Both the position numbers and the translations under genes were made by a program. From sequence record FR725450.1: a stretch of 23,750 nucleotides of DNA, one strand, 5' to 3'. The notes beneath the pieces were generated by a model. The model did not search any database. It saw only the letters and a list, made by a program, of their open reading frames with translations, and was not told the DNA's origin. Shown piece after piece: positions 3,664-20,117 of the stretch; within the stretch, counting starts at the first letter, position 1, and the number at the start of each line of letters is the position of its first letter.

Positions 3664-3674
3664 TAGTTCTCTTT
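3664..3674 (+). promoter_or_regulatory. Putative late-promoter motif copy
   Basis: TAGTTCTCTTT, 38 nt before ATG 3702. Confidence 0.7.
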
Positions 3675-3701
3675 CAGGACAGCCTTCTAATCCTCTCCAG
3701 C

Positions 3702-3920
3702 ATGGAAATCACGATTGAACAGCCAATATCTGTACAGCATGAAGCAGACTTGAAGGCAGCGATCCAGGACAAGCTCAAGGAGTGGGACCTGCGCGAGCCG
3801 GCCGTGTCCATCAAGGTGCGCAGCGCGCTTACGGAACAGGAAAAGACTGCGCTGCTTGTATTGATAAGGAACTTTTACGTGTCGCACGGGTATCCTAACC
3901 CTACAATGGGCACAAGCTAG
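3702..3920 (+). CDS. Hypothetical viral protein (72 aa)
   Basis: ORF MEITIEQPISV...; start chosen from motif spacing; no family recognised. Confidence 0.7.
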   Translation: MEITIEQPISVQHEADLKAAIQDKLKEWDLREPAVSIKVRSALTEQEKTALLVLIRNFYVSHGYPNPTMGTS

Positions 3921-4025
3921 CAGCGTGACAAGCATCCGTACGCCACAATAATAATAACAACCGGACGGGCCAGGGCGCTGCATCATGCACCCGATTAATC
4001 CTTAAGCGCTTGGCCGAGACCTGAT

Positions 4026-4039
4026 CAGTTCTCTTTTTT
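4026..4039 (+). promoter_or_regulatory. Putative late-promoter motif copy
   Basis: CAGTTCTCTTTTTT, 35 nt before ATG 4061. Confidence 0.75.
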
Positions 4040-4060
4040 CCGCCTGCACAACCTCAATCC

Positions 4061-4396
4061 ATGCTCAAGCTAGTGCTTACGCAAGGGTACACATTTGCCG
4101 CAAACGACTATGGCCGCCCGTACGCCTTCAGGATATACAACGAGGACGACACGCCGTTTGACGCGACCACGTACGGCCTGCCAACAATCAAGGTCTTTGG
4201 CATTTCTGGCAACGCGGCCATACAACCGCTGGCAGGCAGCTGGACCGCACAGAACCAGGGAGCAGGCGCGTTTTCCTTTGCGCAGTCAAACTGCCTGACT
4301 GCATCCGGCCCGCACTACATTGAAGTCCAGCTGGAAAAGCCCGGCGTGGCGACAAGCACCGGGCGGCGCAGGATAACAGTCACGCCAAGCCCATAG
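4061..4396 (+). CDS. Small beta-rich virion protein, BppU N-terminal (DUF2479)-like Ig fold
   Basis: Pattern LTQG...YAFRIYNEDDTPFDAT...GAFSF...GPHYIEVQL resembles BppU-type domains (recognised by eye). Confidence 0.5.
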   Translation: MLKLVLTQGYTFAANDYGRPYAFRIYNEDDTPFDATTYGLPTIKVFGISGNAAIQPLAGSWTAQNQGAGAFSFAQSNCLTASGPHYIEVQLEKPGVATSTGRRRITVTPSP

Positions 4397-4405
4397 TTCT
4401 CTTTT
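4394..4405 (+). promoter_or_regulatory. Putative late-promoter motif copy
   Basis: TAGTTCTCTTTT overlapping the upstream stop, 35 nt before GTG 4429. Confidence 0.78.
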
Positions 4406-4428
4406 CTTTTTGCCTGCATTGAAGATGC

Positions 4429-5841
4429 GTGAACCTGCGTTTCTGGCGGCCAAAGCAAGAGGTCTATGGCGTCACGCTTTCAGAGCCGAGTACTAACTCG
4501 TCGTCCCAGGTCTCTGACTATTCGCAGTACCAGCTGTACGTCAGGCCCGAGGTCGACTTTCAGACGTGCTACGAATACTACCGCACAATAGGCAAGGTGC
4601 AGAACGCCGTCGAGTCGTACGTCGCCGAGATCCTGTCGCGGGACTGGTACTTTGAGGGCGCGCAGGAAGGCGTGCAGGCGTGCGAAGAGTGGGAGGACCG
4701 GTTCAACCTCTCGCGCATCATCGAATACATTGTCCGCGACTGGCTCGTATGCGGAAATTCCATCATCGGCATCTCTGACTGGCAGCCCGTGCAAATATCG
4801 TCGATAGCAGGCGTAAGGCGCAGCCCGTACGGGATTGCAGAGCAGTTCGTGCAGGTAGTCAACGGCCGGGAGGTGCCTCTTGACGCGTCGCGCTTTATCC
4901 ACACGCAGTACATCGAGGTAAACCGCGAGGCGTGGGGCATCGGCATGTTCCACTCGCTCCTGACAACGTTTGACTATGGCAGCAGGAAAAGGTCGCTTCC
5001 GCACCTGGAGATCTACCGGCGGCAGATACAGCTTTTCTACAAGATACTGGAAAGGTACGGCTCGCCGGTGACCGTGTGGTTCTTTGAGAACGTGGCCAAG
5101 GCCGAGTTTGACCGGCAGGTCGAGGAGCTGCGGGCGCTGGAGCCGGGCGACAGGCGCATACTTTCAAAAAAGGTCGAGATAGCGACAGAGACTGTCGACG
5201 CGCGGGGCAACCTCATCAACGCGACGTCGCCGGTGATAAACCAGGAAATCGAGGCAGGGTTGCAGACGTCTGCGAACCGGCTGATAACGCAGCCGAGCGC
5301 GATGGCAGATGCCAGAATAGGATCAGAGTACGATGACTCGAAAACTACTGCGATCATGGAAAAGATCAGGCGCGTAATGAATGTCTTGATAATTCCAAAG
5401 ATAACGTTAGCAAGAGTGGAGTTCAAGTGGGGCAAAAAAGACAACTTTGAATTTGATTTCAATCAGTTATTGCAGGCCAAGAGCGCCGGATTTGTTTCTT
5501 CAGAAGAAGGCAGGGCGATCCTGCAGTCTGTTGGCTGGAAACTGGATGACAATCTTTTCAACGCACAGCAGCAATTACAAAAGCAGGAAGACTTTCGTTT
5601 TTTAAATGAAAGAGTGCGGCATATAATTTGCAGCACTCTTCAGGAATTCAATCCATACCACGATGAACGCGGCCGTTTTGCTAGTGCTACAGGCGCCACT
5701 AATTTCTCTGTCGTAGCAACAAAAAGACCAAGAAATTCAAAAGTCAACATAAATGAGCCCATTATACAATCTGAAACACCTACTGAGCAACACAGAATTA
5801 GAGCAAGAAAAAGTGATACAAAACTTTCCCAACAAGATTAG
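4429..5841 (+). CDS. Portal protein with a low-GC C-terminal extension containing an NPYHDERGRF motif
   Basis: Located between TerL and protease/MCP. Portal-like segments (VQNAVESYVAEIL, IVRDWLVCGNS, WGIGMFHSLL, EFKWG). The core ends near 5550, and codon usage turns AT-rich from ~5310. Confidence 0.88.
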   Translation: MNLRFWRPKQEVYGVTLSEPSTNSSSQVSDYSQYQLYVRPEVDFQTCYEYYRTIGKVQNAVESYVAEILSRDWYFEGAQEGVQACEEWEDRFNLSRIIEYIVRDWLVCGNSIIGISDWQPVQISSIAGVRRSPYGIAEQFVQVVNGREVPLDASRFIHTQYIEVNREAWGIGMFHSLLTTFDYGSRKRSLPHLEIYRRQIQLFYKILERYGSPVTVWFFENVAKAEFDRQVEELRALEPGDRRILSKKVEIATETVDARGNLINATSPVINQEIEAGLQTSANRLITQPSAMADARIGSEYDDSKTTAIMEKIRRVMNVLIIPKITLARVEFKWGKKDNFEFDFNQLLQAKSAGFVSSEEGRAILQSVGWKLDDNLFNAQQQLQKQEDFRFLNERVRHIICSTLQEFNPYHDERGRFASATGATNFSVVATKRPRNSKVNINEPIIQSETPTEQHRIRARKSDTKLSQQD

Positions 5842-6445
5842 TGAAGAAACTGCTACAGAGCAGATCTACAAAGCAGAAAAGATAAGAGAGCAGTTTGTAA
5901 ATTTAGCCGACAGGCAAATTGATGATATTTCCGCAGCATATCCTGATGCAGAGGTGACTGCTAGAATAAAAGATAGTTCGAGTATGGTTGAAAAAGTTTT
6001 GCGCAAGCCGAATCAATACAACGATGTATCGCAATTACAAGATACACTAGGTGTTAGAGTAGTTACTAAAGATCTGGATGAACTTGAAACGATCACATCA
6101 GATCTAACAACTAGATACGAAGTTGTATCTGAGGTTAGTTATGTTGATGTACCAAAGCTAGATGGCTATAGAGGCTATCATCTAAATGTAAAAGACAAAT
6201 ACACAGGTCTTGTGAATGAGATACAGATAAGAACAAAGAATCAAGACAAGTGGGCGGATCTTATGCACAATAGAGTTTACAAACCGTCAAAGGAATTAGA
6301 AGAGAGAGTCAGAATGAATCAAGATTCAATATACAAATATGCAAATGAACTTTCAGACTATTATTACAGACTTGATTCAGGCGAGAAAAAAGTTAAAAAA
6401 CCTGAAATATCTAAAATAATTAGAGACATACTAGGAGATGACTAA
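5753..6445 (+). CDS. RelA/SpoT-family small alarmone synthetase domain (putative toxin)
   Basis: All synthetase motifs present: RIKDSSSMVEKVLRK, LQDTLGVRVV, GYRGYH, EIQIRT..QDKWADLMHNRVYK. No hydrolase or regulatory domains. Overlaps the portal 3' end by 89 nt in the +1 frame. Confidence 0.92.
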   Translation: MSPLYNLKHLLSNTELEQEKVIQNFPNKISEETATEQIYKAEKIREQFVNLADRQIDDISAAYPDAEVTARIKDSSSMVEKVLRKPNQYNDVSQLQDTLGVRVVTKDLDELETITSDLTTRYEVVSEVSYVDVPKLDGYRGYHLNVKDKYTGLVNEIQIRTKNQDKWADLMHNRVYKPSKELEERVRMNQDSIYKYANELSDYYYRLDSGEKKVKKPEISKIIRDILGDD

Positions 6446-6656
6446 CACGGATAATTTCATCACAAAGATGTTAGATGATGTTGACAGGCATACACCCAAA
6501 ACAGGCTATAATCTTGTTGTGATAGATGATTTCGAGCCTTTTGGTGAGCAGCTCTATACCTTAGGACACTACGAGACCTATGAAGCAGCTCTTGCAGCCC
6601 AAGAACAACTTAGTGGCAACACTGTAATTTATCCACACAAGCGCGAAAAAGAATGA
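6438..6656 (+). CDS. Putative immunity/antitoxin protein (72 aa, acidic)
   Basis: Start overlaps the synthetase stop (ATGACTAA), same low-GC island. Role inferred from position only. Confidence 0.55.
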   Translation: MTNTDNFITKMLDDVDRHTPKTGYNLVVIDDFEPFGEQLYTLGHYETYEAALAAQEQLSGNTVIYPHKREKE

Positions 6657-6865
6657 TTGAAAAGCATCCTAGAAATATTATCTATGCTAATAAGCCTGAC
6701 TGCCCTGAAATAGTACGTAAAACGATCGGATGTATGGAGGAAGACTGACACATGGTTGAAGAAACTTGGCTTGACAAGAAGGGCATTTCGACACGTATGA
6801 TGAAGCTTTAGAGGCTCAGAAAAAAATACAAAGGCAATTCGGTAATTTATGGACCTGATGATTGA
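6653..6865 (+). pseudogene. Decayed paralog of the upstream immunity-like gene
   Basis: Reconstructed C-terminus GHFDTYDEALEAQKKYKGNSVIYGPDD matches GHYETYEAALAAQEQLSGNTVIYPHK of 6438..6656. It has an in-frame TGA (6746-6748), a missing base near 6780 and an extra A in the A7 tract (6820-6826). Its ATG overlaps the previous stop (ATGA). Confidence 0.7.
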
Positions 6866-6894
6866 ATAACCTTTGGCCCGTAGAACTCGTACAG

Positions 6895-6908
6895 TAGTTC
6901 TCTTTTTT
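6895..6908 (+). promoter_or_regulatory. Putative late-promoter motif copy
   Basis: TAGTTCTCTTTTTT, 34 nt before GTG 6929. Confidence 0.78.
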
Positions 6909-6928
6909 CTAGCCTCATAATCTCATGC

Positions 6929-8659
6929 GTGAAACCTCAAGTCAAGATCGAGTTTGTCACATCTGCCAAGGAAAAGAAAAGGATTGCCGGCATACTTGCA
7001 ATCCCACGCATTTCAAGAAACGGCAATCTGTACCTGCCCGAAGAACTGGAAAAAGCGCACGGCAGAACGGTCCCCGTACTATGGAACCACGAGGGCAGCC
7101 CAAAGAGCGCCAGCGAGCCTGTACGCCAGTCCGACGTCATTGGCGCAATGCGCCTTTTCTGGGACTCTGACCTGATGCAATTAAAGTACGAGGCCGAGGT
7201 GGACCGCGACCTGCCGGAAATCCCACTGCATACCTCGCTGGGCGCGTTTTTCGAGCGCGAGGACCATGTCTGCGGAAACACGCGCTGCTACTCTGTTCCC
7301 CGCGGCCTGCGCTTTGTGGAAGCGTCGCTAACCCCTACGCCAGGCATCCCGGAAACAACAGTCAAGATCCTAGAGAATTTTGCGTGCAGGCAATGCCGGC
7401 TTAGTTCTCTTACAAGCGAAGCATCCAACCGGGGTATCATGTCTTCTTCAAACAACGATTCAGGTGGCGGACAGGATACGTCGTGCATCACAAGCAAGCA
7501 GTTCCAGGACGGCATCAAGAGCCTGATAGACGCAATGGGCAGGCGCTTTGCAGACAAGCAGCAGCTGCAAACAGAGGCAGCGGCAAGGGCGCCTTCGAGC
7601 ATGGTCGACGACTCGAACACGCGCGCAAGGCAGGAGTCGTACAACCGCGTGGTAGAGTTTTTCCAGCGCGTCAAGGAAAACCCAAAGGATGTCTCGTTCC
7701 CGGCAGTCTCGTGGAACATTGACAAGAACGAGTACCTTGGAAGGTGGGGCTACAACATCAGCCCGCGCGCCAAGAAAGAGGCAGTGACGATAACCGCCGG
7801 CGACATGGGGCAGGTCTTTTCAAAGCAGATCCTAGTCGTCCCGGGCGGCAGGATGAAGATTCCTGTGAGGCAGTACTGCAACTTTACTGAAATCCCTGCA
7901 GGAAACGACAGGGCACATTTCTACACGATAGGCGCATTTGACTTTGGCACGATAACCGAGGGGACAGAGCCCACAAACGTGTCGCAGACCGTGAGCAAAA
8001 AGACGGCCACGCCTTCAATACGCGGGGCGGTCCAGCGCGTCGGCTACTCGCAGGTAGAGAACGCGCCTTTCGGCCTCGTGGATGCGATAAACGAGGCGAT
8101 GGTCCTTGCCTCGATAGATGATGAAGCTTCCGACCTGCTGTCGACAACGTACGACGCCATAACGCCCACCAACTGGGTCCGCGCAGACACCGGAGCTGCG
8201 ATAACCTTGGACGATGTTGCAAGCCTGACGTTCAAGCGCGAGGGGTTGCTTGCGGCAAAGCGCCTGATAGCGCAGCAGGGCCACGACGTGAGCCCCGGCA
8301 ACCTCGTGCTTTTCATGCACCCAAAGGCGTACCAGGAGCTCCTGCTTGACACCAACCTGAACAACTTTTACCAGTACGCCCGGCCGGAGATAACTGCGAC
8401 CGGCATACTTGAGCAGATATATGGAGTCGACATCGTGATCGCCGATCAGGTAAAGGCACAGGACAACACCACAAACGACACGTACCGCAACGTTCTTGCG
8501 GTCAAGGGCGTGGCCTTTGGCATGGCCTCTGCAAGGAACGTGACTATGGAGGCCCAGCGCAGGAACGAGACCCAGCAGGTGGTGCTGTCAGGGACGCACA
8601 GGGTAAAATCGGTAGTCATTGACGAGACTGCAAGCTGCCGCATATCGTCGGCTCAGTAA
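6929..8659 (+). CDS. Prohead protease-scaffold-major capsid protein (HK97 fold) polyprotein
   Basis: N-terminal protease motifs (SRNGNLY, PVLWNHEG, TSLG, RFVEASLTPTPGIPET), a low-complexity/coiled linker, then an MCP-like region (GTITEGTE, LVLFMHPKAYQELL, IYGVDIVIADQV). Confidence 0.88.
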   Translation: MKPQVKIEFVTSAKEKKRIAGILAIPRISRNGNLYLPEELEKAHGRTVPVLWNHEGSPKSASEPVRQSDVIGAMRLFWDSDLMQLKYEAEVDRDLPEIPLHTSLGAFFEREDHVCGNTRCYSVPRGLRFVEASLTPTPGIPETTVKILENFACRQCRLSSLTSEASNRGIMSSSNNDSGGGQDTSCITSKQFQDGIKSLIDAMGRRFADKQQLQTEAAARAPSSMVDDSNTRARQESYNRVVEFFQRVKENPKDVSFPAVSWNIDKNEYLGRWGYNISPRAKKEAVTITAGDMGQVFSKQILVVPGGRMKIPVRQYCNFTEIPAGNDRAHFYTIGAFDFGTITEGTEPTNVSQTVSKKTATPSIRGAVQRVGYSQVENAPFGLVDAINEAMVLASIDDEASDLLSTTYDAITPTNWVRADTGAAITLDDVASLTFKREGLLAAKRLIAQQGHDVSPGNLVLFMHPKAYQELLLDTNLNNFYQYARPEITATGILEQIYGVDIVIADQVKAQDNTTNDTYRNVLAVKGVAFGMASARNVTMEAQRRNETQQVVLSGTHRVKSVVIDETASCRISSAQ

Positions 8660-8675
8660 TAGGTGAGAGACCACT

Positions 8676-8801
8676 GTGGCCGACCTCAAGTCCATCTTTG
8701 ACAAATACATCCGCGAGGGCGAGTCCGGGAGGAGCAACACCAACGAGCTCCTCAAGGCCATCGTCGACGAGATCGAGGCGCTCAAGTCAAAAAGGCGCTA
8801 A
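8676..8801 (+). CDS. Small hypothetical protein (41 aa, MADLKSIFDKYIREG...SKRR), not in the ORF track
   Basis: GTG start with SD-like GGTGA at 8662-8666. It fills the gap after MCP, and its stop begins the next motif copy. Confidence 0.7.
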   Translation: MADLKSIFDKYIREGESGRSNTNELLKAIVDEIEALKSKRR

Positions 8802-8811
8802 TTCTCTTTTT
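8799..8811 (+). promoter_or_regulatory. Putative late-promoter motif copy
   Basis: TAATTCTCTTTTT, 37 nt before ATG 8836. Confidence 0.7.
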
Positions 8812-8835
8812 CATTTTTTGTGCAAGGTTTTTTCC

Positions 8836-9195
8836 ATGACCTACTATGAAATCATGCGACTTCGAGAGATAACGCTTGGATCGCCTTCGGACACGTCGCA
8901 GGACATGCTGCTAAACGCCAAGGGCGCGCAAGCAGATTCTCAGATAGATGACGAGCTGTACATCGTCGCAAACAGGTATTCAAAGTTGCAGAGCCTGCCG
9001 GCGCTTCCGCTTGCCGGCACGATGCTGACGCAGTCGATAAGGGACGCGGCTACAGACAGGGCTGCTTCGCTCTTTTTCCTGGTGCAGCGCCAGCCCGCGA
9101 TGGCAGACAAGTACGCGCAGAGCAGCGAGAGGGCGGTGCAGGCGTACGAGATGCGGCTTGACAGCGAGGGCGAGATCTACAGCGACAGCACCTAG
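8836..9195 (+). CDS. Putative head-tail adaptor (gp15/gp6-like)
   Basis: 119 aa helical protein right after MCP (DAATDRAASLFF..., AVQAYEMRL). Assignment based on synteny and size. Confidence 0.55.
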   Translation: MTYYEIMRLREITLGSPSDTSQDMLLNAKGAQADSQIDDELYIVANRYSKLQSLPALPLAGTMLTQSIRDAATDRAASLFFLVQRQPAMADKYAQSSERAVQAYEMRLDSEGEIYSDST

Positions 9196-9201
9196 TTCTA
9201 T

Positions 9202-9501
9202 ATGTGTAAAAAAGATGGTGAGTATTTGGGAGCATTGGACCACATCAACAGAGAAGAGTTCCAGAATTTCCGCCAGGATGCCGGCGAGCACTTCAAGATG
9301 CTGCACGAGTGCGACAGGCGCATAGAGCGCAAGATAGACGAGCTTGCCGCCCTGCTGGAGCCCGTGCTTGACGAGCACGCCCAGAGCATGGAAAGCAGGC
9401 GCGGCAGGCGTGAGGTCAAGATGCTTGCGATAGGCGCCGCCCTTGGCGCGTTCTTTAGCGCAGTGACAGCCGCGATGCTGCTTCTTTTCCAGCTGGGCTA
9501 G
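9202..9501 (+). CDS. Coiled-coil protein with a C-terminal transmembrane helix (holin/lysis-like candidate)
   Basis: Charged coiled region followed by MLAIGAALGAFFSAVTAAMLLLF. Start uncertain (TTG 9226 possible). Confidence 0.6.
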   Translation: MCKKDGEYLGALDHINREEFQNFRQDAGEHFKMLHECDRRIERKIDELAALLEPVLDEHAQSMESRRGRREVKMLAIGAALGAFFSAVTAAMLLLFQLG

Positions 9502-9509
9502 TTCTTTTT
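9499..9509 (+). promoter_or_regulatory. Putative late-promoter motif copy
   Basis: TAGTTCTTTTT, 35 nt before ATG 9534. Confidence 0.7.
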
Positions 9510-9533
9510 GCCCTTTTTCTGCAAGAGACTTTC

Positions 9534-9743
9534 ATGAGCGATCCATCCGTAGAAAAAGTGAGCCTGAACGCCAAGGAGATAATCCTTGCAATAGTGGTGT
9601 CTGCCGGGGCAGTCACGGCCCTGGTCTCTGCCGGCGCGCTCTGGACCGGACACGCAGAGATAGCGGAAAAGGCGGGCCTTGCGTTTGTGAGCGGCATCGT
9701 GGGCTTTGGCGCGGGCATCGTGACTGCGCTGTGGGGCCGCTAG
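9534..9743 (+). CDS. Small two-TM membrane protein (holin-like candidate)
   Basis: Two hydrophobic helices (IILAIVVSAGAVTALVSAGALW; LAFVSGIVGFGAGIVTALW) in 69 aa. Confidence 0.6.
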   Translation: MSDPSVEKVSLNAKEIILAIVVSAGAVTALVSAGALWTGHAEIAEKAGLAFVSGIVGFGAGIVTALWGR

Positions 9744-9750
9744 TTCTTTT
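9741..9750 (+). promoter_or_regulatory. Putative late-promoter motif copy
   Basis: TAGTTCTTTT, 36 nt before in-frame GTG 9777. Confidence 0.55.
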
Positions 9751-9776
9751 CTGGTTTTCTTTCATTTTTGTTGTTT

Positions 9777-10256
9777 GTGGGAGCAGCAGTAGAACATCTG
9801 TGCTTTACATTCGATGTCTGCGTAGTTGGTTTTGGACATTCTTCCTTAAGATGCATTGAATGTGGTCTTGTACTTGAAACTGAAAACTGTAAATGGGTTG
9901 CAATTGACGGCAGGCCAATATGCATAAAACATCATCATGATATCACATACACAGACGTTGAGAAAAACTATTCCAAGTTTATTGCAGGTACAACCAAACG
10001 TAATTTTACATTTGATCCGGAAACTGGAAAGGCATACGATGCAACTGATCCTGAATGCGCAAAGAAATTTTACGAAATATATGGAGACCGTAAAAACAAC
10101 GTCGCCTTAATTGCCATAACTAATAATAGATCTAATAGTCTGAATGATACTACAAAAAGAGCATTTCATAAACTGCAAAAAGAACAAAAAGATCGTTCGT
10201 TGGGAGGTGGATATCTGATGGAAACAAAACATACACCGATATATCCTTCGCTGTAG
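9777..10256 (+). CDS. Low-GC accessory protein with a Cys/His Zn-binding cluster
   Basis: RCIECG...C...PICIKHHH. AT-rich codons unlike the neighbours. Start is 9768 (TTG) or 9777 (GTG). Confidence 0.65.
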   Translation: MGAAVEHLCFTFDVCVVGFGHSSLRCIECGLVLETENCKWVAIDGRPICIKHHHDITYTDVEKNYSKFIAGTTKRNFTFDPETGKAYDATDPECAKKFYEIYGDRKNNVALIAITNNRSNSLNDTTKRAFHKLQKEQKDRSLGGGYLMETKHTPIYPSL

Positions 10257-10352
10257 CAGGACAAAACGACAGCGAGCTTGGAATGCTGTTAAAGCGCTAT
10301 AAGCAAGAAGCAATATTGATTATCGGCAAGAACGGAAAAATAAGGTGGTTAT

Positions 10353-10544
10353 ATGAAGAGTGAACAAAAAAGACTGGGCGGGCTTAAGTTCAAGAACCCT
10401 TGGCCAACAAGAGTTGAAGGAGATGTGCTTCCTATAGCTGTCATCTATCGTCTAATGTTCTTGGGATTCTCTGACAGAGATCTTTCACCTGAAGCTAGAG
10501 AAGCTCTTTACGCATATACTGCTACATTTAGCGACACACAATAG
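10353..10544 (+). CDS. Low-GC hypothetical protein (63 aa)
   Basis: SD-like AAGGTGG ~8 nt upstream of ATG; no family recognised. Confidence 0.55.
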   Translation: MKSEQKRLGGLKFKNPWPTRVEGDVLPIAVIYRLMFLGFSDRDLSPEAREALYAYTATFSDTQ

Positions 10545-10587
10545 AAAAAGGAATAATGACGACTGGTAACAACAACGACGTGTATAT

Positions 10588-10600
10588 TAGTTCTCAATTT
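10588..10600 (+). promoter_or_regulatory. Putative late-promoter motif copy
   Basis: TAGTTCTCAATTT, 35 nt before ATG 10623. Confidence 0.72.
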
Positions 10601-10622
10601 CTCCACCTTGTAACTTTATTGC

Positions 10623-10811: not shown

Positions 10812-10823
10812 TAGTTCTCTTTT
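10812..10823 (+). promoter_or_regulatory. Putative late-promoter motif copy
   Basis: TAGTTCTCTTTT, 35 nt before ATG 10847. Confidence 0.78.
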
Positions 10824-10846: not shown

Positions 10847-11326
10847 ATGTCTGAAACCTGGAAGGTCGCCGGCCAGTCTTCCGACCTCACAAAAACTGTC
10901 GAGATGCTCGTGAAGGAAAAGCTGGAATCGCAGTGGACAGAGACTGACCCGCCTGCTGCAAGCATTGACTTTGGAACCGGCTGGGGCGCCGGGATGACGA
11001 AAAACTATGCTGTGCACTGCCTTCATGCCTCTACCACCTCGGCTCCTGTAGTGAACGGCTGGTCAAAGTACATGTACGAGACGCTTGTTGACGTGCACGT
11101 GTTTGCGCTGCGCACCACGCTTTTTGAGCCGGACCAGCTGCGAAAGATGCGACAGCACATTGACAAGATAATCGCACAGAACAAGGCGTCGCTTGGCCAG
11201 GGAATATCGTCGATGAGGCTCGTAAGGTGGACAGCCGCGCACGACCCAAAGGACATCACTGACACGCCGTACTGGCACCTTGTCGGCCACCACAAAATAA
11301 CATACTACAAGGTCAACACCGCTTAG
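10847..11326 (+). CDS. Putative tail terminator / tail completion protein
   Basis: 159 aa alpha/beta protein directly before the tail tube gene (VDVHVF...LRKMRQHIDKII...WHLVGHHKITY). Start moved to ATG 10847. Confidence 0.6.
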   Translation: MSETWKVAGQSSDLTKTVEMLVKEKLESQWTETDPPAASIDFGTGWGAGMTKNYAVHCLHASTTSAPVVNGWSKYMYETLVDVHVFALRTTLFEPDQLRKMRQHIDKIIAQNKASLGQGISSMRLVRWTAAHDPKDITDTPYWHLVGHHKITYYKVNTA

Positions 11327-11335
11327 TTCTCTTTA
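11324..11335 (+). promoter_or_regulatory. Putative late-promoter motif copy
   Basis: TAGTTCTCTTTA overlapping the upstream stop, 35 nt before ATG 11359. Confidence 0.78.
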
Positions 11336-12830: not shown

Positions 12831-13208
12831 GTGCTTTCGGTCAAGGGGGTAAGCGAGGCAATGCGCATACTGGACGAAGTGTCGCGCGAGCTTGCCGGAG
12901 GAGACATTGCCGGCGCAAGCCTTGAGGCGGTAGGCAAAGCAGCGCTGGATCTTGCCAACGCCCAGACTCCTGTCGACACGGGGCTGCTTGTCTCAAACAA
13001 CAAGATGGAGATGAAAAGCAAGGCCGAGCTGGTGCTGTATAACGACACACCCTATGCAGGCCACGTCCACTATGGCACGTCAAGGATGCATCCAAGGCCG
13101 TTCTTCTACCCTGCCCTGCGCTTTCTCGAAGAGCGCTTTCCGCGGCTGTACGCGCAGGAAGTGGGCGCCTTTGTGCACAAGACGGTGTCGCTGAATTCTG
13201 CCAGGTAA
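12831..13208 (+). CDS. HK97 gp10-like tail completion/neck protein
   Basis: Signature TPVDTGLL...YAGHVHYGTSRMHPRPFFYPAL. Start is GTG 12831 or ATG 12861. Confidence 0.82.
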   Translation: MLSVKGVSEAMRILDEVSRELAGGDIAGASLEAVGKAALDLANAQTPVDTGLLVSNNKMEMKSKAELVLYNDTPYAGHVHYGTSRMHPRPFFYPALRFLEERFPRLYAQEVGAFVHKTVSLNSAR

Positions 13209-13215
13209 TTCTCTT
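13206..13215 (+). promoter_or_regulatory. Putative late-promoter motif copy
   Basis: TAATTCTCTT, 38 nt before TTG 13244. Confidence 0.55.
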
Positions 13216-13243
13216 GGCTTGCTGCGGAGCATGAACAGCAACA

Positions 13244-15028: not shown

Positions 15029-15072
15029 AATCAGAATAGCTGAAATACTACCGGCAAAATAATAGAAAACCA

Positions 15073-15669
15073 GTGACTCTTCCAAAGGGGTACAGGCCGG
15101 AAAGGGTTCTCTGGCAGGACGACATCACCCAGGGCCTTTTCAGGCAAAGCGTGGTCGAGCACCGGGAAATAACCACGCTCCGGGTCATCAAGAACGAGGT
15201 CGGCATCAGGCTTGCAGACATTGACGAGATATTGGTAGTAAACACAGAGATAGAGTATGATTCGGTGTATCACGACAGGAGAAAAAACCGCGCGCTTGGC
15301 CCGGAGGGCAGATTCAACGCCAAGACACGGGTCATCGGCGACATCCAGTTTTTCCAGAACGGCAACCTTGTGCTTGTCCTCAACGATGTCTATGATCCAG
15401 AGGAAGTGGCAGGCATCGTGCGGTCTGCAAGGGCTGGAGCCGCCGAAGAACAGGCGCTGCGCAGGGTCAAAGAGGTCCTGGCCGGGCAAGCTCCTGTATC
15501 GGGCAGCAGGACTCCTGTGTCCTGCCCCTCATGTGCAGGCGAAAACCCTCCTGGATCTAATTTCTGCAACAAGTGCGGCGCCGCGCTTCCCCCTGGATGC
15601 CCAAAGTGCGGCAGCAGCAACCTGACCGGGTCTTCGTTCTGCAGCATGTGCGGCAGCCCTCTCAGCTAG
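15073..15669 (+). CDS. PH-like domain plus double zinc ribbon protein (accessory)
   Basis: C-terminal CPSC..NPPGSNFCNKCG / CPKCG...SFCSMCG (DZR); the N-terminus has a bacterial-PH-like pattern; lacks the late motif. Confidence 0.7.
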   Translation: MTLPKGYRPERVLWQDDITQGLFRQSVVEHREITTLRVIKNEVGIRLADIDEILVVNTEIEYDSVYHDRRKNRALGPEGRFNAKTRVIGDIQFFQNGNLVLVLNDVYDPEEVAGIVRSARAGAAEEQALRRVKEVLAGQAPVSGSRTPVSCPSCAGENPPGSNFCNKCGAALPPGCPKCGSSNLTGSSFCSMCGSPLS

Positions 15670-15679
15670 TTCTCATTTT
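15667..15679 (+). promoter_or_regulatory. Putative late-promoter motif copy
   Basis: TAGTTCTCATTTT, 38 nt before in-frame GTG 15705 (ATG 15684 is only 17 nt away). Confidence 0.6.
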
Positions 15680-15704
15680 CCGGATGCGCATAACGGCAGG
15701 CAGT

Positions 15705-17321
15705 GTGACCCTGCCAGATTTATTGCGTCCCCGTATCAAGATTACAAAACATAATGATCCTATCAGCGTATATTTTGATTATAATGCTTTTTCGCCTCCA
15801 AGCTCGGGGCCGCGCGTAATTGCCGTCTCGGTGGAGGACAAGGAACTCGTGCCGGCGCCCTTTACGATAGTGATAGAGGACAGCGATGGCGCGCTTGATG
15901 CAAATGTCGGAAACGGCAACAAAGTCACCATTGCCATCGGCAGCACGCAGGAGAGCCTTGCAAACTTTGTCACCGGCTACGTGCGGCAGGTGCAGGTCCA
16001 GAGGCGCGACACCGGGATAAAGGAGATAACCCTCAATGGCTTTAGCTCGGTAATCCGCCTTGACGAGCGGATCGGCAACTTTTACAGGATAGCCGCAAGG
16101 CAGGCAAACGGCGTCGATCCTGACCCTGACGACCCGAACATGAAGTGCGGCGAGATATTCCGGGACATCTTTGAAGATACAGACCACCTGCCTCTTGGCC
16201 AGCCCCTCGAGTCTTTTTCCACGGGCGGGATAAACGACATCGGCGAGCACCTTGCCTCGATAAAAGAGCCTTTCGTGGAATGGAAGCAGATAGCTGACAG
16301 AATAATGGAAGCTTCTGGCACGGTGTACGGCATCGACGCAGACGATGTCGCCTTTCTCCGCTACCCTACCCTTGCGCACAGCGGGATAACCATCCGCAGC
16401 ATGCCGACCGCTGCCGACCCTGATGAGACAACAGGCTACTTTGTCGGCTCGTGGGGCTACACCGACTCTATAAAAAAGAGCGACGGCTTTTCAAACCGCC
16501 TGTACGGGCGGGGCGGCACCCAGCTCCTGCTTGACGTCGACAGGTTTGCAGACAATGCGTCCGTCGAGTGCCATTCAAAGGACCGCGCTGTACAGTTCAC
16601 TGCGTCCGCGCCGCGCCTTGACAGCGTGTCCCTCGTCCTTTCAAAAACGGGCACGCTTGCGACAGACATCGCCGGCGAGATCCGTCTGGACGACGGAAAC
16701 AACACGCCAGGCGGCGAGGCCGTGGGGACGTTCTCGGTGTTCCGCAACCTCATAGGCGCGTCTGCCGCGGCTGTAAACCGCGTCAACATCTCTATGCACA
16801 GCAACCTGCTGCAGGTGGACAAGAAATACTGGATAGTGATCAAAAAGTCTGGCGACGCGTCAAACCATGTCAGGTGGCACCACGACAACGGCACGTCCGG
16901 CGTCAACGCCGAAAGGGCTTCGTCGACCTGGACCGTCAACACTTCAAGCTACGTTCTGGCGCACCGCACGTATTTTAGCCGGAGGGTGCTTGCCGAGGCG
17001 TCGGACCAGAAATCCATCGACAGGTATGGCCTTGTCGAGTCAGTGGTGGACGCGCCGTGGATAATCGAGGGGCAGACGATGGACGCGTACCTGACTGCGA
17101 TGCTGCAGTATTCTGCCCTGCAGCACCGCGTCTACGACGTGAAGAAGATCTACGCGCCTGCGACCCTGATAAACGCAGGCAAGCTTGCGCGGCTTGTGGA
17201 CGAGACCTCCGGCATAGACTCTGACGCGGAGATAGTGATGTCGCGCTACCGCTTCCGGGCTGACGAAAGCGGCCTTGGCACCCGCTATGCCGAGGTCCAG
17301 CTGCAAGGGTACGTGCGCTAG
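15705..17321 (+). CDS. Baseplate hub / Tal-like tail tip protein with an inserted beta-sandwich domain
   Basis: After TMP; hub-like segments (YVRQVQVQRR..ITLNG, WKQIADRIMEASG, FSNRLYGRGG, SIDRYGLVESVV). Start is 15684 or 15705. Confidence 0.65.
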   Translation: MTLPDLLRPRIKITKHNDPISVYFDYNAFSPPSSGPRVIAVSVEDKELVPAPFTIVIEDSDGALDANVGNGNKVTIAIGSTQESLANFVTGYVRQVQVQRRDTGIKEITLNGFSSVIRLDERIGNFYRIAARQANGVDPDPDDPNMKCGEIFRDIFEDTDHLPLGQPLESFSTGGINDIGEHLASIKEPFVEWKQIADRIMEASGTVYGIDADDVAFLRYPTLAHSGITIRSMPTAADPDETTGYFVGSWGYTDSIKKSDGFSNRLYGRGGTQLLLDVDRFADNASVECHSKDRAVQFTASAPRLDSVSLVLSKTGTLATDIAGEIRLDDGNNTPGGEAVGTFSVFRNLIGASAAAVNRVNISMHSNLLQVDKKYWIVIKKSGDASNHVRWHHDNGTSGVNAERASSTWTVNTSSYVLAHRTYFSRRVLAEASDQKSIDRYGLVESVVDAPWIIEGQTMDAYLTAMLQYSALQHRVYDVKKIYAPATLINAGKLARLVDETSGIDSDAEIVMSRYRFRADESGLGTRYAEVQLQGYVR

Positions 17322-17326
17322 TTAGT

Positions 17327-17338
17327 TAGTTCTCTATT
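17327..17338 (+). promoter_or_regulatory. Putative late-promoter motif copy
   Basis: TAGTTCTCTATT, 35 nt before GTG 17362. Confidence 0.75.
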
Positions 17339-17361
17339 GTCTGCCGTGCAGTACATGCGGC

Positions 17362-17925
17362 GTGTCGCACACACTTGATTACCTTGACGTAAACAGGGCC
17401 GCGCTCTTTTCCAAGTCTGATGCCAAATACGTCAGGCGCCAGCTTTTTGCGGACAGGATTGACGCGTTTAACGAGCGTCTGGAACGCGTGCTTGCCGACC
17501 AGACCGCTTATGACGACCTTGTGCACCGGCATCTTGAGCCGCTGCAGGTAAGAAGGAAGGTAGACCTTGTGGTCAACTCTGGCCTGCAGCGCCTCGCCAA
17601 GCTGGCCACGGGCAAGACCACGAGCTCGTTTACACACGTTGCCTGCGGGACAGGCACCAACGCTGAAAACGCAGGCGACACCGCGCTGCAGGCAGAGGTC
17701 CGGCGCATAGCGTGCACGGACCGCTTTGACTCGGGAACGTCAATGAAGTTCTCCGGCTTTTTCGATTCAACAACGGCGACTGGCAGCTACACGGAATTCG
17801 GGCTGTTTGACGCCTCTTCCGGGGGCAACATGTTCTCGCGCACCGTGTTCTCGCCTGCCATCAATCACGCGCAGAACTCGACCGTCTTTGTACTGACCCA
17901 GGTGGTGAGCCAGGCAGCGTCATGA
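17362..17925 (+). CDS. Tail fibre-associated / baseplate-attachment protein
   Basis: HVACGTGT...DTALQAEV.R...EFGLFDASSGGNMFSR pattern, common in tail-fibre N-terminal modules. Confidence 0.65.
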   Translation: MSHTLDYLDVNRAALFSKSDAKYVRRQLFADRIDAFNERLERVLADQTAYDDLVHRHLEPLQVRRKVDLVVNSGLQRLAKLATGKTTSSFTHVACGTGTNAENAGDTALQAEVRRIACTDRFDSGTSMKFSGFFDSTTATGSYTEFGLFDASSGGNMFSRTVFSPAINHAQNSTVFVLTQVVSQAAS

Positions 17926-18314
17926 GCTTCCGGCAATTGCGCAAGATTCCCGGCCTTGACAACATCGTCAAGGACCTTGCCGAAAAGCAGAACAGGGCGC
18001 AGGCCGAGGATGGCATAGAGGACCTCACGCTTTTCCGGCAGAACAGGGTCGACACCGACGCAATCACGTACGCGGACACTGAAAGCCACGCGGCAAACGG
18101 CGACAGGACGGATGCCGACGGCATTTCACTTGCTGACGTGGAAACAGCGCTGGCGCAAAACAGACAGCAATTTGACGCAGATGGAGATTTCTTTTGCGGG
18201 AGCGGGGCTGTCATCAACGAAACCGACAAGCCTTCTGGAGCATTTGCAGGCGGCATTGGAAACTTCAACGAGCCGGACCAACCAGCCGTCGCGGACTTCT
18301 CCGATGCAGGGTAG
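17922..18314 (+). CDS. Acidic hypothetical tail-region protein (130 aa)
   Basis: ATGA overlap with the previous gene; Asp/Ala-rich. Confidence 0.65.
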   Translation: MSFRQLRKIPGLDNIVKDLAEKQNRAQAEDGIEDLTLFRQNRVDTDAITYADTESHAANGDRTDADGISLADVETALAQNRQQFDADGDFFCGSGAVINETDKPSGAFAGGIGNFNEPDQPAVADFSDAG

Positions 18315-18329
18315 AGTGATGATGGGTAG

Positions 18330-19811
18330 ATGGCGCTAAAAAAGCTCAATGTACCAGGCGTCAATCCCGGCAGCGTGGACAAGCTGTACGGCGAGGACTG
18401 GAACCGGCTCGTCGACGCGCTGACCGGCAACGTTGCAGAAAACATAACCCTCACCGGCTTGTTCAAGGTCAGCCGTCCCAATGCTGATCTTGCTGAATTT
18501 GTGGATACGAGTGTCGGCGTCAAGCTGAAGGTGAGGCCAATAACCTCGGGCACGCGCTGGATGAGCTTTGACATTGATGTTGATGGCGGCGGCTATGTCA
18601 CGGATGTGTTGCAGCTACGAGAGCAAGAAGTCAGAATAAACCAGCAATGCAATATTTTGGCTAACGTTGAAAGTGTCTTCTCTGCCAAAAGAACGAGCAC
18701 TGGCGCCGTAGGCTATGAGTTGGGCAGCAATGATGCCACTGGCGGCAACGTCTACATCGACTTGCATACAGACAGCGGCGACGGAGACTATAGGTCAAGA
18801 ATTATCAGGAACAACGGCGCAAACGGCACTTTCGATCTTCAGCAGACCGGCACGGGCGCCATTCGGCTCATTGGCGCCAACGTCAATGTTGATAGCGGAA
18901 AACAACTCTTTCTTGATGGCGGCGGCGATACTTACCTGAGCGAAGTAGCAGCTAACCAGCTGCGTGCAACGGCAGGCGGCGCCGAGGTATGGACGGCTGT
19001 GCAAACGGCCCTTAATGTAGTGCAGGATCTCAAACTCGCCGCGGCAAAGAGGCTATACCTTGACGGTGGTGGAGACACGTACATCTATGAAAGCAGTGCA
19101 AACGTACTTGATTTTCTGGCTGGTAATATTTTGGCAATGCGTCTAACTAATGTCAGCGCGTCTTTTGGCCAAGCCCTGACAATTCAAAATGATCAGGCTG
19201 ACCTAATAAGGGCATACAGGCCAAATAACACGCCGACAACAGGCAGTGGAATTCGGTTTGACCTTAACGATTCGGCAGGGAACCAAGAAGCGTATGCATT
19301 GATATACGGTATAATTGTCACCAACACAAACGGCGCCGAGGATGGCAAACTCTCGTTTAGGACAAAGAAAGCAGGCACTATGAAGAACTGGATGGAATTG
19401 CTGCAAGATGGAACATTCAGGATCTACGAAGATGCAGGCATTAAAAGCGTCTCTTTGAGACATGACGGCAATAATGCCATTCTTGCGGTATCGTCTGGAG
19501 ATCTAGTCCTCCAACCGGGAGCTAACGTTTCAATACCTTCAACAAAGAAACTTTATCTCGACGGCGGCGGTGACACGTTCATCCATGAAGCCAGCGCCAA
19601 TATGCTAGATATTGTAAGCGGTGGGAGCGTAGGCATTTCGCTTCGTGGAACCGGCCAGGTATGGCTGAGGGCAGGAAGCGGCGCAGCCGACCCGACTGCA
19701 AGCGATATCAACGCTGGCTATGGGATGTGGTGGAAAAACACTACGGCAAACGAAGTCAGGCTGTGGTACAACGATGGCGGAACGATGAAGAAAAGCGCAG
19801 CCCTTGCCTGA
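18330..19811 (+). CDS. Tail fibre / receptor-binding protein
   Basis: 493 aa, Gly/Asn/Thr-rich beta repeats, three internal LDGGGDT repeats, at the end of the tail module. Confidence 0.78.
   Translation: MALKKLNVPGVNPGSVDKLYGEDWNRLVDALTGNVAENITLTGLFKVSRPNADLAEFVDTSVGVKLKVRPITSGTRWMSFDIDVDGGGYVTDVLQLREQEVRINQQCNILANVESVFSAKRTSTGAVGYELGSNDATGGNVYIDLHTDSGDGDYRSRIIRNNGANGTFDLQQTGTGAIRLIGANVNVDSGKQLFLDGGGDTYLSEVAANQLRATAGGAEVWTAVQTALNVVQDLKLAAAKRLYLDGGGDTYIYESSANVLDFLAGNILAMRLTNVSASFGQALTIQNDQADLIRAYRPNNTPTTGSGIRFDLNDSAGNQEAYALIYGIIVTNTNGAEDGKLSFRTKKAGTMKNWMELLQDGTFRIYEDAGIKSVSLRHDGNNAILAVSSGDLVLQPGANVSIPSTKKLYLDGGGDTFIHEASANMLDIVSGGSVGISLRGTGQVWLRAGSGAADPTASDINAGYGMWWKNTTANEVRLWYNDGGTMKKSAALA
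18899..19624 (+). repeat. Three copies of a ~27 aa protein repeat K.L.LDGGGDT(Y/F)..E..AN.L....GG
   Basis: LDGGGDT codons start at 18912, 19059 and 19557 (spacing 49 and 166 aa); synonymous sites have diverged. Confidence 0.85.
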
Positions 19812-19812
19812 A

Positions 19813-19822
19813 TAATTCTCTA
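19813..19822 (+). promoter_or_regulatory. Putative late-promoter motif copy
   Basis: TAATTCTCTA, 35 nt before ATG 19848. Confidence 0.7.
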
Positions 19823-19847
19823 CTATCTCCTTTTTTCATTATCTGCC

Positions 19848-20117
19848 ATGCCAGAATTATTAACATTTCAACAAAAAGTCGACGCCTTTGTCAATGCTGC
19901 ACGCAAGGTCGCAGACAGGGCAGAGGACTATGACCGCAAGATCCTGCGCGACGGCAATGGCAATGCAGCCAACCTTGCAGACCCTATTTTCGGCCTGTCA
20001 GAAACAGAAATCACGACCAAGCTCAAGATGCGCATAAAGCCAGAATGGGATAATTTCAGGCAGGCAGAAGCGACGATGCTCGCAGAGCTGCAAGGGATTG
20101 ACGGCGCCATAGAGTGA
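19848..20117 (+). CDS. Hypothetical helical protein (89 aa)
   Basis: ORF after the fibre gene with the motif at canonical spacing. Confidence 0.7.
   Translation: MPELLTFQQKVDAFVNAARKVADRAEDYDRKILRDGNGNAANLADPIFGLSETEITTKLKMRIKPEWDNFRQAEATMLAELQGIDGAIE

Follow-up and report, generated by a model that had tools for sequence, protein, structure and literature searches.

Archaeal transcription is thought to start almost always at a TATA box bound by TBP, with the BRE in a helping role, and the box normally occupies positions of about -30 to -23. The late promoters of phage T4 (TATAAATA) are read by gp55/gp33, and the stoperators of cluster A mycobacteriophages are bacterial repressor sites without a fixed distance to the next start. 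The late promoters of beta- and gammaherpesviruses carry a non-canonical TATT box that is read by a viral TBP-like protein (PMC6541308). Archaeal viruses are not known to encode an RNA polymerase of their own. All 11 analysed genomes of Thaumarchaeota were assigned to the leaderless-dominated class, and their promoter box is located about 26 nt from the starts (PMC6028130).

The stretch of DNA investigated here (23,750 nt of FR725450.1; the window) represents the tailed provirus Nvie-Pro1 of the ammonia-oxidising archaeon Nitrososphaera viennensis. Our analysis suggests, with a probability of roughly two thirds, that the sequence TARTTCTCWT is a lineage-specific, TATA-less core promoter of leaderless late transcripts, whose T-tract may also terminate transcription. 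It shares with the BRE/TATA core promoters of leaderless archaeal genes the position relative to the start codon, the directionality and, at most of the linked starts, a pyrimidine at -1 and a purine at +1, and its 5' half ARTTC resembles the sequence abutting the TATA box in some host promoters, but it lacks both the A/T-alternating TATA box (CTCTTTTT or TCTTAC is present instead) and a purine-rich BRE. As in the early-gene promoters of Sulfolobales viruses (PMC11065993), a shared sequence marks a temporal class of virus genes; however, the class motifs described for archaeal viruses keep the canonical TTTAWATA box and the BRE, which are replaced by the motif in the provirus. The late promoters of T4 and other phages likewise represent a short conserved element that replaces the host consensus before morphogenetic genes only, and such a replacement implies a switch of the recognition factor. 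In T4 this factor is known and belongs to a bacterial sigma system, whereas the provirus would depend on the archaeal TBP/TFB/RNAP machinery. In the herpesviruses, as in the provirus, a box at the TATA position of late structural genes is modified within a TBP-type system, but a viral TBP mimic and a six-protein complex are known from the herpesviruses, whereas no TBP- or TFB-like gene was found in the element.

Distribution of the motif and its relation to start codons

The sequence TARTTCTCW is present in 15 copies on the plus strand of the window (3664-19821) and in one on the minus strand, and annotated start codons lie 34-38 nt downstream of 14 copies. Scanning of the window with the degenerate 9-mer [TCA]A[GA]TTCT[CT][TA] retrieved 15 matches on the plus and one on the minus strand, compared to about 2.2 expected per strand (Poisson P = 1e-8). 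When nine related loci were included, the numbers rose to 81 and 23, respectively. An ORF of at least 40 aa begins 32-41 nt after 69 of the plus-strand matches and one of the minus-strand matches, a linkage far above the random-position rate of 0.156 (binomial P = 2e-43), and the distance has its mode at 35 nt (range 33-40 nt; 69 to 86 instances). The 10-mer TARTTCTCWT describes the motif better, because position 10 is occupied by T in 58 of 69 instances. The copies in the window and the elements associated with them are as follows.

3664..3673, plus strand: motif copy TAGTTCTCTT, 38 nt before ATG 3702 (72-aa gene)
4026..4035, plus strand: motif copy CAGTTCTCTT, 35 nt before ATG 4061 (111-aa gene, conserved in all relatives)
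4394..4403, plus strand: motif copy that supplies the TAG stop codon of gene 4061-4396, 35 nt before GTG 4429 (portal)
6882-6887: inverted half-site AGAACT just upstream of the following copy
6895..6904, plus strand: motif copy, 34 nt before GTG 6929 (protease-capsid fusion)
7402..7411, plus strand: perfect internal copy of the motif within the protease-capsid gene (6929-8659), with the in-frame ATG 7439 located 37 nt downstream
7439..8659, plus strand: predicted nested product of 406 aa, comprising a linker/scaffold-like region and the HK97-type capsid protein without the protease domain
8799..8808, plus strand: motif copy TAATTCTCTT that supplies the TAA stop codon of 8676-8801, 37 nt before ATG 8836
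9193..9201, plus strand: off-geometry variant TAGTTCTAT whose TAG is the stop of 8836-9195, 9 nt to ATG 9202 and 42 nt to TTG 9235, the latter with a GGTGA Shine-Dalgarno (SD) sequence
9499..9508, plus strand: motif copy TAGTTCTTTT, containing the upstream gene's stop, 35 nt before ATG 9534
9741..9750, plus strand: motif copy TAGTTCTTTT, containing the upstream gene's stop, 36 nt before GTG 9777
10588..10597, plus strand: motif copy TAGTTCTCAA, 35 nt before ATG 10623
10812..10821, plus strand: motif copy, 35 nt before ATG 10847
11324..11333, plus strand: motif copy, containing the upstream gene's stop, 35 nt before ATG 11359 (tail tube protein)
13206..13215, plus strand: motif copy TAATTCTCTT, containing the upstream gene's stop, 38 nt before TTG 13244 (tape-measure-like protein, 594 aa)
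15667..15676, plus strand: motif copy TAGTTCTCAT whose TAG/TAA is the stop of 15073-15669, 38 nt before GTG 15705
17327..17336, plus strand: motif copy, 35 nt before GTG 17362
19813..19822, plus strand: motif copy TAATTCTCTA, 35 nt before ATG 19848

The 14 copies listed in a first-pass annotation of this DNA, together with their distances to the start codons, were all correct; two further copies, the perfect one at 7402 and the variant at 9193, had been missed. Its assertion that the motif precedes almost every structural gene was overstated, as this applies to 14 of the 26 genes from 3702 onward. The remaining genes are coupled or SD-led members of motif units or reside in a low-GC insert. 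A division of transcription into many short units is probable.

The nucleotide at -1 of the 14 motif genes in the window is C in 11 cases and T in two, with the A of the TTG-started tape-measure gene as the one exception, exactly as the first reading had it. SD sequences (a match of at least 5 nt to GGAGGTGATC) are absent from all 14 motif genes but present in 7 of 14 motif-less genes (Fisher P = 0.006), in line with the earlier description of several of the latter as coupled or SD-bearing. Considering the window and its relatives together, C or T is found at -1 in 64 and A or G at +1 in 74 of 86 motif-linked starts, and 32 of the 86 (37%) are GTG or TTG. Leaderless translation has been reported to be ATG-dependent in haloarchaea (PMC6161675); either thaumarchaea differ from haloarchaea in this respect, or the transcription start site (TSS) of these genes lies a few bases upstream.

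Host promoters and the early region of the element

Clear host promoters in the flanks exhibit a TTTAWAWA box that starts between -32 and -27 from the start codon. The host TATA box (start at about -30) thus has the same position relative to the start codon as the motif, which substantiates the former placement of the motif at the BRE/TATA site before SD-less starts. The fixed position typical of an archaeal core promoter is represented by the fixed distance between motif and start codon, but no A/T-rich TATA box (TTTAWATA-like, about 26-27 nt before the putative TSS) was found at the motif-linked starts. Positions -30 to -23 read CTCTTTTY in the intergenic copies and CTCTTACA in the internal copy, and A accounts for 0-13% of the bases at the majority of positions between -32 and -14. 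Unlike described BREs, TARTT is not purine-rich. The motif's 5' half ARTTC adjoins canonical TATA boxes in three host promoters, and ATTC(C) does so in the early promoter of the element itself; because of this likeness the motif may be recognised by a host TFB, a simpler alternative that had not been raised in the first-pass annotation. A scan of 33.9 kb of flanking host and non-module DNA, which is a part of the genome, found the motif at chance level (8 matches versus 6.2 expected), as would be anticipated for an element-specific signal.

The region upstream of the motif-bearing genes is organized differently.

872..1252, minus strand: conserved 126-aa gene and candidate regulator, transcribed divergently from the control region
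1245..1367: divergent control region with canonical TATA boxes, conserved in five elements
within 1245..1367: TATA box TTATATAA, serving the minus-strand gene
1247-1262 and 1300-1315: two AACATGTT-type boxes in the divergent control region
1318-1325: TATA box TTTTAATA, serving the plus-strand operon and preceded by ATTCC
1368..2245, plus strand: gene before TerL, frameshifted near 1559-1598, without motif
2263-3633: TerL, without motif

The early operon, which comprises a TerS-like gene and TerL, has a conserved canonical TTTTAATA box, and the element therefore appears to contain two promoter classes. Sequence and comparative evidence support the earlier proposal that the motif marks a distinct promoter class for morphogenetic genes. 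The product encoded before TerL, which the first-pass annotation had considered as the putative initiation factor, had been delimited as 1353..2245, but its real start is ATG 1368, and the gene is frameshifted in comparison with intact orthologues of 274-294 aa, which exhibit a helical N-domain and a C-terminal CxxC..CxxC zinc ribbon. Family and fold searches retrieved no family match and no usable fold match for this product. It is either a small terminase subunit, which also fits because of its location directly before TerL, or a regulator. The 872..1252 product had no family match either, and the AACATGTT boxes are more likely than the motif to be the sites of this candidate regulator.

Conservation in related elements and the copy within the capsid gene

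The comparison with related proviruses, which had been suggested at the outset, revealed ten related elements in which the motif occurs again with the same spacing (mode 35 nt) and with the internal copy. Their capsid identities range from 83% down to about 37% and their GC contents from 37 to 58%; the spacers diverge while the motif is kept. At the junctions of the portal, the 111-aa gene and the capsid, the motif is present in almost every relative that holds the gene, with the portal of L020 as the sole exception, and the junction orthologous to the 4026 copy contains it in all eight relatives with the 111-aa gene. Among the relatives compared, the motif was never found before TerL or the orthologues of 8676, 12237, 12599, 17922 and 18330, and the genes before TerL also lack it in L020, a free-virus-like contig.

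The internal copy is present in all 11 elements, each time with an ATG 37-40 nt downstream. In the window it is read as (C)TT AGT TCT CTT, corresponding to L S S L. The preceding codon always ends in T, whereas its amino acid varies between L, V, S, H, N, D and G, the Ser codon is TCT throughout the 11 elements, and S/N and L/H replacements track the R and W degeneracy of the motif. Synonymous as well as non-conservative codon choices hence follow the DNA motif, which shows that selection acts on the DNA. A nested capsid gene is the predicted consequence of the internal copy. Internal leaderless transcripts that yield protein isoforms are documented in Halobacterium (PMC6161675), and a nested scaffold ORF has been documented for an archaeal tailed virus (bioRxiv 10.64898/2026.09.13.751334). 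The internal ORF of HFTV1 gp17 and the internal transcripts of Halobacterium (PMC6161675) have in common with the nested product predicted for the provirus that a shorter in-frame product arises within a protease or capsid-assembly gene; in HFTV1 there is evidence for internal translation, whereas in the provirus a promoter copy of its own is predicted within the coding sequence.

Recognition of the motif and alternative explanations

The data are best reconciled by a model in which TARTTCTCWT and the following pyrimidine- or T-rich tract constitute the core promoter of the late (virion) genes in tailed viruses, proviruses or GTA-like elements of Nitrososphaeria. The motif lies at -35 to -26 from the start codon, a stretch in which leaderless host genes have their BRE and the 5' portion of the TATA box. 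Host RNA polymerase would start at the start codon or within a few bases of it, as suggested by the C at -1 and the purine at +1. In about 14 short units the first gene would thereby obtain a leaderless mRNA, and the downstream genes of a unit would be translated via SD sequences or start/stop overlaps. By serving as an internal promoter, the copy within the protease-capsid gene would yield a leaderless mRNA that encodes the 406-aa capsid protein lacking the protease. Termination of the upstream transcript is probably a second function of the T-runs behind the intergenic copies, and each junction of 32-36 nt would therefore combine a terminator and a promoter.

The motif may be read by a host TFB, with the ARTTC half serving as its BRE, or by a dedicated activator. 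No transcription factor was identified among the genes of the element. Compared to known archaeal promoters, CTCTTTTT offers TBP a poor site, and ammonia-oxidising archaea (AOA) have been reported to possess one TBP (PMC12448741), so initiation putatively needs a compensating mechanism. A more radical version, in which the TBP-TATA contact is absent altogether and TARTTCTCWT is the site where a dedicated factor nucleates the pre-initiation complex, is conceivable but rather doubtful. A particular host TFB paralogue to which TBP contributes little or nothing could be such a factor, as could a virus protein that has escaped recognition, for example the HTH/zinc-ribbon protein encoded before TerL.

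Instead of a promoter, the 9-10-mer could represent an operator that is bound by a repressor or activator at each junction, with a weak T-rich tract or a single upstream promoter as the real start of transcription. The motif copies resemble stoperators in that many asymmetric sites are found in one orientation in short intergenic regions and often over stop codons. The conserved divergent gene 872-1252 provides a candidate regulator, and inverted AGAACT half-sites just upstream of the capsid promoter (window, L008, L020) and the tail-tube promoter (L020), 5 at 88 sites compared to 0.8 expected, hint at a sequence-specific and possibly dimeric protein. However, stoperators have no fixed relation to start codons, whereas the constant 34-38 nt to SD-less starts is predicted by a core promoter; the junctions of 32-36 nt contain no other promoter-like element, and the control region beside 872-1252 has the different AACATGTT boxes. 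We thus regard operators as an unlikely explanation, which is partly compatible with the core promoter if an activator site overlaps it. A function at the RNA level, with UARUUCUCWU as a translation enhancer for SD-less internal starts or as a processing site within one or a few long polycistronic RNAs, is very unlikely. It would agree with the long late operons usual in tailed phages, the sense-strand location at a fixed distance to start codons, the internal one included, and long assembled contigs (library type unspecified) that cross several junctions, and the many GTG and TTG starts would be easier to explain with a leader. Nevertheless, 35 nt exceed the mRNA stretch held by an initiating ribosome, and we know of no archaeal RNA signal of this kind. 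The folding of eight junctions revealed neither a common fold nor a conserved RNA structure at the motif, with z-scores mostly near zero (range -2.2 to +1.3; -0.7 to +1.3 in seven junctions and -2.15 in one). A constant spacing to the start codon would be unnecessary for a processing site, the motif coincides with the host TATA/BRE position and has ARTTC in common with it, and the C at -1 followed by a purine fits an initiator.

The observation that many copies double as the stop codon of the upstream gene holds for 8 of 16, in which the motif's own TAG or TAA is used, and the U-tract described along with it follows most intergenic copies (9 of 14) but is missing from five of them and from the internal copy. 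All 12 intergenic plus-strand runs of at least 5 T in the module are located within 35 nt after a motif copy, which would also be expected if motif and T-tract did nothing but end the upstream transcript and the spacing merely reflected tight packing. This explanation is hardly tenable. The internal capsid copy would be harmful as a terminator and yet is kept with its downstream ATG in every element, the copies at 3664, 4026, 6895 and 10588 precede first genes after long gaps where there is nothing to terminate, and oligo-T termination in Archaea requires no specific 9-mer.

A whole thaumarchaeal lineage of tailed viruses or GTA-like elements maintains a precise signal without a TATA box where the core promoters of its virion genes are expected. 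The motif provides a concrete in vitro template for RNAP, TBP and the several TFB paralogues of thaumarchaea, with which the allocation of tasks among these paralogues could be addressed. Reading without TBP, if true, would establish a TATA-independent promoter class in Archaea and imply that a whole lineage of AOA viruses uses the motif as its early-to-late switch. The frameshifted gene before TerL, if needed, is a possible reason why particles of Nvie-Pro1 have not been seen. Ammonia-oxidising archaea are important for nitrogen cycling worldwide, and cultures exist for very few of their viruses; in uncultivated AOA viruses the motif may provide a sequence tag for late genes and their true start codons.

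Position and conservation of the motif

The motif lies upstream of most virion genes of Nvie-Pro1, the Nitrososphaera viennensis EN76 provirus of the window (FR725450.1). Its scanned form, the 9-mer [TCA]A[GA]TTCT[CT][TA], has 15 matches on the + strand of the window (3664-19821) versus one on the - strand, against an expectation of ~2.2 per strand (P = 1e-8). Annotated start codons are located 34-38 nt 3' of 14 copies, and every copy and distance listed in the first-pass annotation proved correct. Overlooked there was the 15th copy, a perfect TAGTTCTCT at 7402; a 16th copy at 9193 is degenerate (TAGTTCTAT) and off-geometry. The 9-mer is directly followed by a T in 58 of 69 instances, and the motif is therefore better given as TARTTCTCWT. 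No conservation was found 5' of it. At eight of the 16 copies the TAG or TAA within the motif also ends the gene before it, resulting in junctions of 32-36 nt. The annotated genes of the element and its host flanks are:

9-824, host DUF72 gene, left flank
2263-3633, + strand, TerL
4429-5841, + strand, Mu-type portal
5753-6656, low-GC RelA/SpoT insert between the portal and capsid genes (Pfam E = 4e-20)
6929-8659, + strand, protease-capsid fusion
11359-12237, + strand, tail tube
13244-15028, + strand, tape-measure-like protein of 594 aa
as far as 20386, distal tail genes
21372-22169, host cbiH-type methylase, right side (a multicopper oxidase is also among the flanking host genes)

This annotation is consistent with the published account, in which Nvie-Pro1 is a head-tailed provirus that has its protease and capsid fused (PMC6563490). 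The window agrees to 99.99-100% with contigs obtained from N. viennensis cultures.

With the protease-capsid protein as query, 66 relatives were retrieved; a metagenome scan with the capsid alignment found none. We compared DNA from ten further elements (L007-L011, L013, L014, L016, L020 and L027), five of which are Nitrososphaera MAGs or contigs with a capsid identity of 83-65%, the rest having 47% and ~37%; two are low-GC contigs (37-40% GC). TARTTCT-type motifs are found in all ten, on the coding strand and 33-40 nt (mode 35) from the start codons that follow. Ten loci, comprising the window and nine relatives, contain 81 matches on the + strand versus 23 on the - strand, and a qualifying start (an ORF of at least 40 aa beginning 32-41 nt after the motif) follows 69 of the former versus one of the latter (P = 2e-43, random-position rate 0.156). 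At orthologous junctions the spacers diverge, while the motif and its distance are kept, as is the pattern of which junctions carry it. Chance or a composition artefact as the source of the motif is ruled out by the enrichment in the window (P = 1e-8) together with these positioning statistics.

Early control region, accessory genes and flanks

The motif is absent before the pre-TerL gene (1368-2245, + strand) and TerL in every relative. In the free-virus-like contig L020 a dozen small genes upstream of TerL lack it, and ten genes from TerL onward have it. This absence from the early genes and presence further on make the motif specific to the morphogenetic module. A degenerate sequence resembling the motif, TAGCTCTTT in the window (2243-2251) and TAGTTCCTT in L011 (~3404-3412), overlaps the pre-TerL stop, with the TerL ATG just 20-24 nt after it; it is either a decayed or non-functional copy or a coincidence.

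A conserved 126-aa gene (872-1252, - strand) is separated from the pre-TerL gene (ATG 1368) by a control region with two boxes of the AACATGTT type and two canonical TATA boxes. The TTTTAATA located at 1318-1325 does not vary among five elements. Two copies of TAACATGTTnnnACAT, the AACATGTT palindrome, are located at 1245-1325, each adjoining a canonical TATA box, and are kept in L007, L009, L011 and L013. From its layout this divergent region looks like a genetic switch.

The pre-TerL gene had been proposed at 1353..2245 as a candidate initiation factor, but these coordinates need correction: the start is the ATG at 1368, and the gene is split by a frameshift in N. viennensis. The frame changes near 1559-1598, at a CCCCCGGGG run, so that different frames encode aa 1-77 and aa 65-289; more than 25 contigs carry an intact orthologue of 274-294 aa. 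The frameshift is probably real, because Illumina-era contigs show it as well, and it might explain an inactive provirus. In L013, a contig at 3x coverage, the gene is also split, but elsewhere. In the protein model a helical N-domain is predicted with confidence and a zinc ribbon is present at the C-terminus, but overall the model is poor (AlphaFold pLDDT 62.8, pTM 0.30); a Foldseek search of PDB with this model (pLDDT 62.8) gave nothing below E = 0.6. The position of the gene suits a small terminase subunit as well as a regulator.

The insert at 5753-6656 has a GC content of ~37% versus ~56% in its surroundings. Its RelA/SpoT-domain protein also matches the PADLOC candidate defence family PDC-S33 (E = 1e-21), and a 72-aa ORF overlaps 3' of the RelA/SpoT gene; both genes are without the motif. 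The content of the insert resembles that of a small alarmone-synthetase toxin-antitoxin or defence 'moron'. A double zinc-ribbon protein (DZR, Zn_Ribbon_1) is the product of 15073-15669, which lies after the tape-measure-like gene and before the next tail gene; this gene has neither motif nor Shine-Dalgarno (SD) sequence and an A-rich upstream region, and tblastn of its product against the other loci found no orthologue.

Nvie-Pro1 has no recognisable att sites or replication genes and is maybe domesticated and GTA-like (PMC6563490). The same host DUF72 gene adjoins the element in N. viennensis (9-824) and in L011 (1-168), a related Nitrososphaera contig with a capsid identity of 83%, where two additional genes (310-585, 885-1643) separate it from the element. 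This common neighbour, which indicates either the same insertion site or vertical inheritance, bears on the GTA-like hypothesis. Left of the window, a cluster in N. viennensis DNA (L017, 12713-20816) with a 777-aa protein, a T6SS_HCP-family (Hcp/tube-like) protein, small ORFs and a >1158-aa protein may represent another tail-like or secretion-related system; it contains no motif copies.

Promoter, terminator, operator or RNA signal

For the host background we used the host flanks of related loci and 20 kb of DNA from N. viennensis outside the window (L017, L018). As previously supposed, host genes use TATA: in clear host promoters a box of the TTTATATA, TTTAAAAT or GATAAATA type has its first base at -32 to -27 relative to the start codon. 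The motif (-35 to -26) with its T-tract therefore coincides exactly with the BRE/TATA position. An equal frequency before ordinary host genes, which the first-pass annotation had named as counting against a dedicated promoter, was not found: 33.9 kb of host/non-module DNA contain eight matches on both strands versus 6.2 expected. Two of them are correctly spaced ahead of sizeable genes (236 and 253 aa), and both are ordinary promoters composed of AATTC and TTTAAAAT or TTTAATTA. The chance-level count in this ~34 kb and the ordinary form of both well-placed matches rule out a general host promoter. In three host promoters a canonical TATA box has ARTTC immediately next to it, as the TATA box in the early promoter of the element has ATTC(C). 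A BRE type used by this host may make up the 5' half of the motif, with the TATA half alone replaced.

Two classes of gene starts can be distinguished in the window, as had been claimed. A match of at least 5 nt to the anti-SD complement GGAGGTGATC occurs in 0 of 14 motif genes versus 7 of 14 motif-less + strand genes (Fisher P = 0.006). The pyrimidine reported at -1 is a C in 11 of 14 motif genes versus just one of 14 motif-less genes (Fisher P = 0.0003), and translational coupling is borne out by the motif-less genes at 12237, 12599, 17922 and 20114, all overlapping the stop of the preceding gene. Such starts would be expected of an archaeon with leaderless first genes of operons and SD-led internal genes; GeneMarkS-2 placed all 11 Thaumarchaeota analysed in the leaderless-first-gene class, their promoter box lying ~26 nt from the start (PMC6028130). 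A weakness of reading the motif as a TATA-less core promoter of leaderless late transcripts is the 37% of GTG or TTG among motif-linked starts, which in haloarchaea would be unfavourable for leaderless translation (PMC6161675).

All 12 intergenic + strand runs of at least five T in the module lie within 35 nt after the motif, at nine of the 14 intergenic copies. Oligo-T is the archaeal intrinsic terminator, which makes combined terminator-promoter junctions plausible. The T-run is absent at the copy at 7402 and at five intergenic copies, and termination therefore cannot be the primary role of the motif; a pure terminator is less well supported than a promoter. The same holds for an RNA-level signal, as no RNA structure was found at the motif. 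Two independently assembled public contigs matching the window, L021 and L004, begin in the T-tract just after the motif, at 6903 (26 nt before the capsid start codon) and 8829 (7 nt before the one at 8836); other contigs begin elsewhere or span the junctions.

AOA are reported to possess one TBP and several TFBs, five of the latter in N. viennensis (PMC12448741, PMC4084955). No TBP-, TFB- or other transcription-factor-like protein was detected among the products of the element, and Pfam, PHROGs and PDB sequence searches with its small proteins and the 289-aa pre-TerL protein gave no match pointing to a factor. An inverted half-site AGAACT, present at five of 88 sites versus 0.8 expected, hints at a sequence-specific protein. 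Three diverged elements have it 0-8 nt upstream of the motif at their capsid promoter, and one has it at a tail-tube promoter:

window 6882-6901
L008 1017-1036
L020 9953-9972 and 14052-14072

In L008 and L020 the half-site gives rise to near-perfect palindromes (AGAACTAGTTCT; GAGAACTAATAGTTCTC); it could be a dimer site or a divergent promoter. Reading all motif copies as an operator array is less well supported, and we prefer a virus late-gene core promoter as the most suitable interpretation of the sequence comparisons. That it represents TATA-independent initiation in Archaea we regard as unlikely. TARTTCTCWT differs from the class-specific promoter motifs described for archaeal viruses, which retain a canonical BRE and TTTAWATA (PMC11065993). 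We found no mention of the motif in a literature search that covered sources other than the original 2011 description of Nvie-Pro1, where a prior mention is possible.

The internal copy and a predicted nested capsid product

The copy at 7402 lies within the protease-capsid gene, 37 nt before an in-frame ATG at 7439. Aligned at the protein level, the protease-capsid linker is variable save for 'SSLT', 'NSHT' or 'NSLS' and a Met 12-13 residues on. The underlying xxT-ART-TCT-CWT is present in the same frame in 11 of 11 elements, with TCT as last codon in one and GAA in another, and its distance to the ATG is 37-40 nt. The preceding codon ends in T throughout, whichever of L, V, S, H, N, D and G it specifies; TCT is used for the second serine in all; and the S/N and L/H replacements correspond exactly to the R and W degeneracies of the intergenic copies. 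A protein-level cause such as a protease site 'SSLT' is ruled out, since wobble bases and non-conservative replacements track the DNA motif. Selection at the internal copy thus acts on the DNA (or RNA) sequence and not on the peptide, and it links the motif with the start that follows, not with a stop upstream of it.

The predicted product of 7439-8659, 406 aa in length, would be a capsid protein with an N-terminal linker and without the protease. Two precedents exist for such a nested product, namely, the isoforms from leaderless internal transcripts of Halobacterium (PMC6161675) and the nested scaffold ORF within the protease gene of the archaeal tailed virus HFTV1 (bioRxiv 10.64898/2026.09.13.751334). 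It would offer the virus a sensible route to many capsid subunits and few protease-bearing ones.
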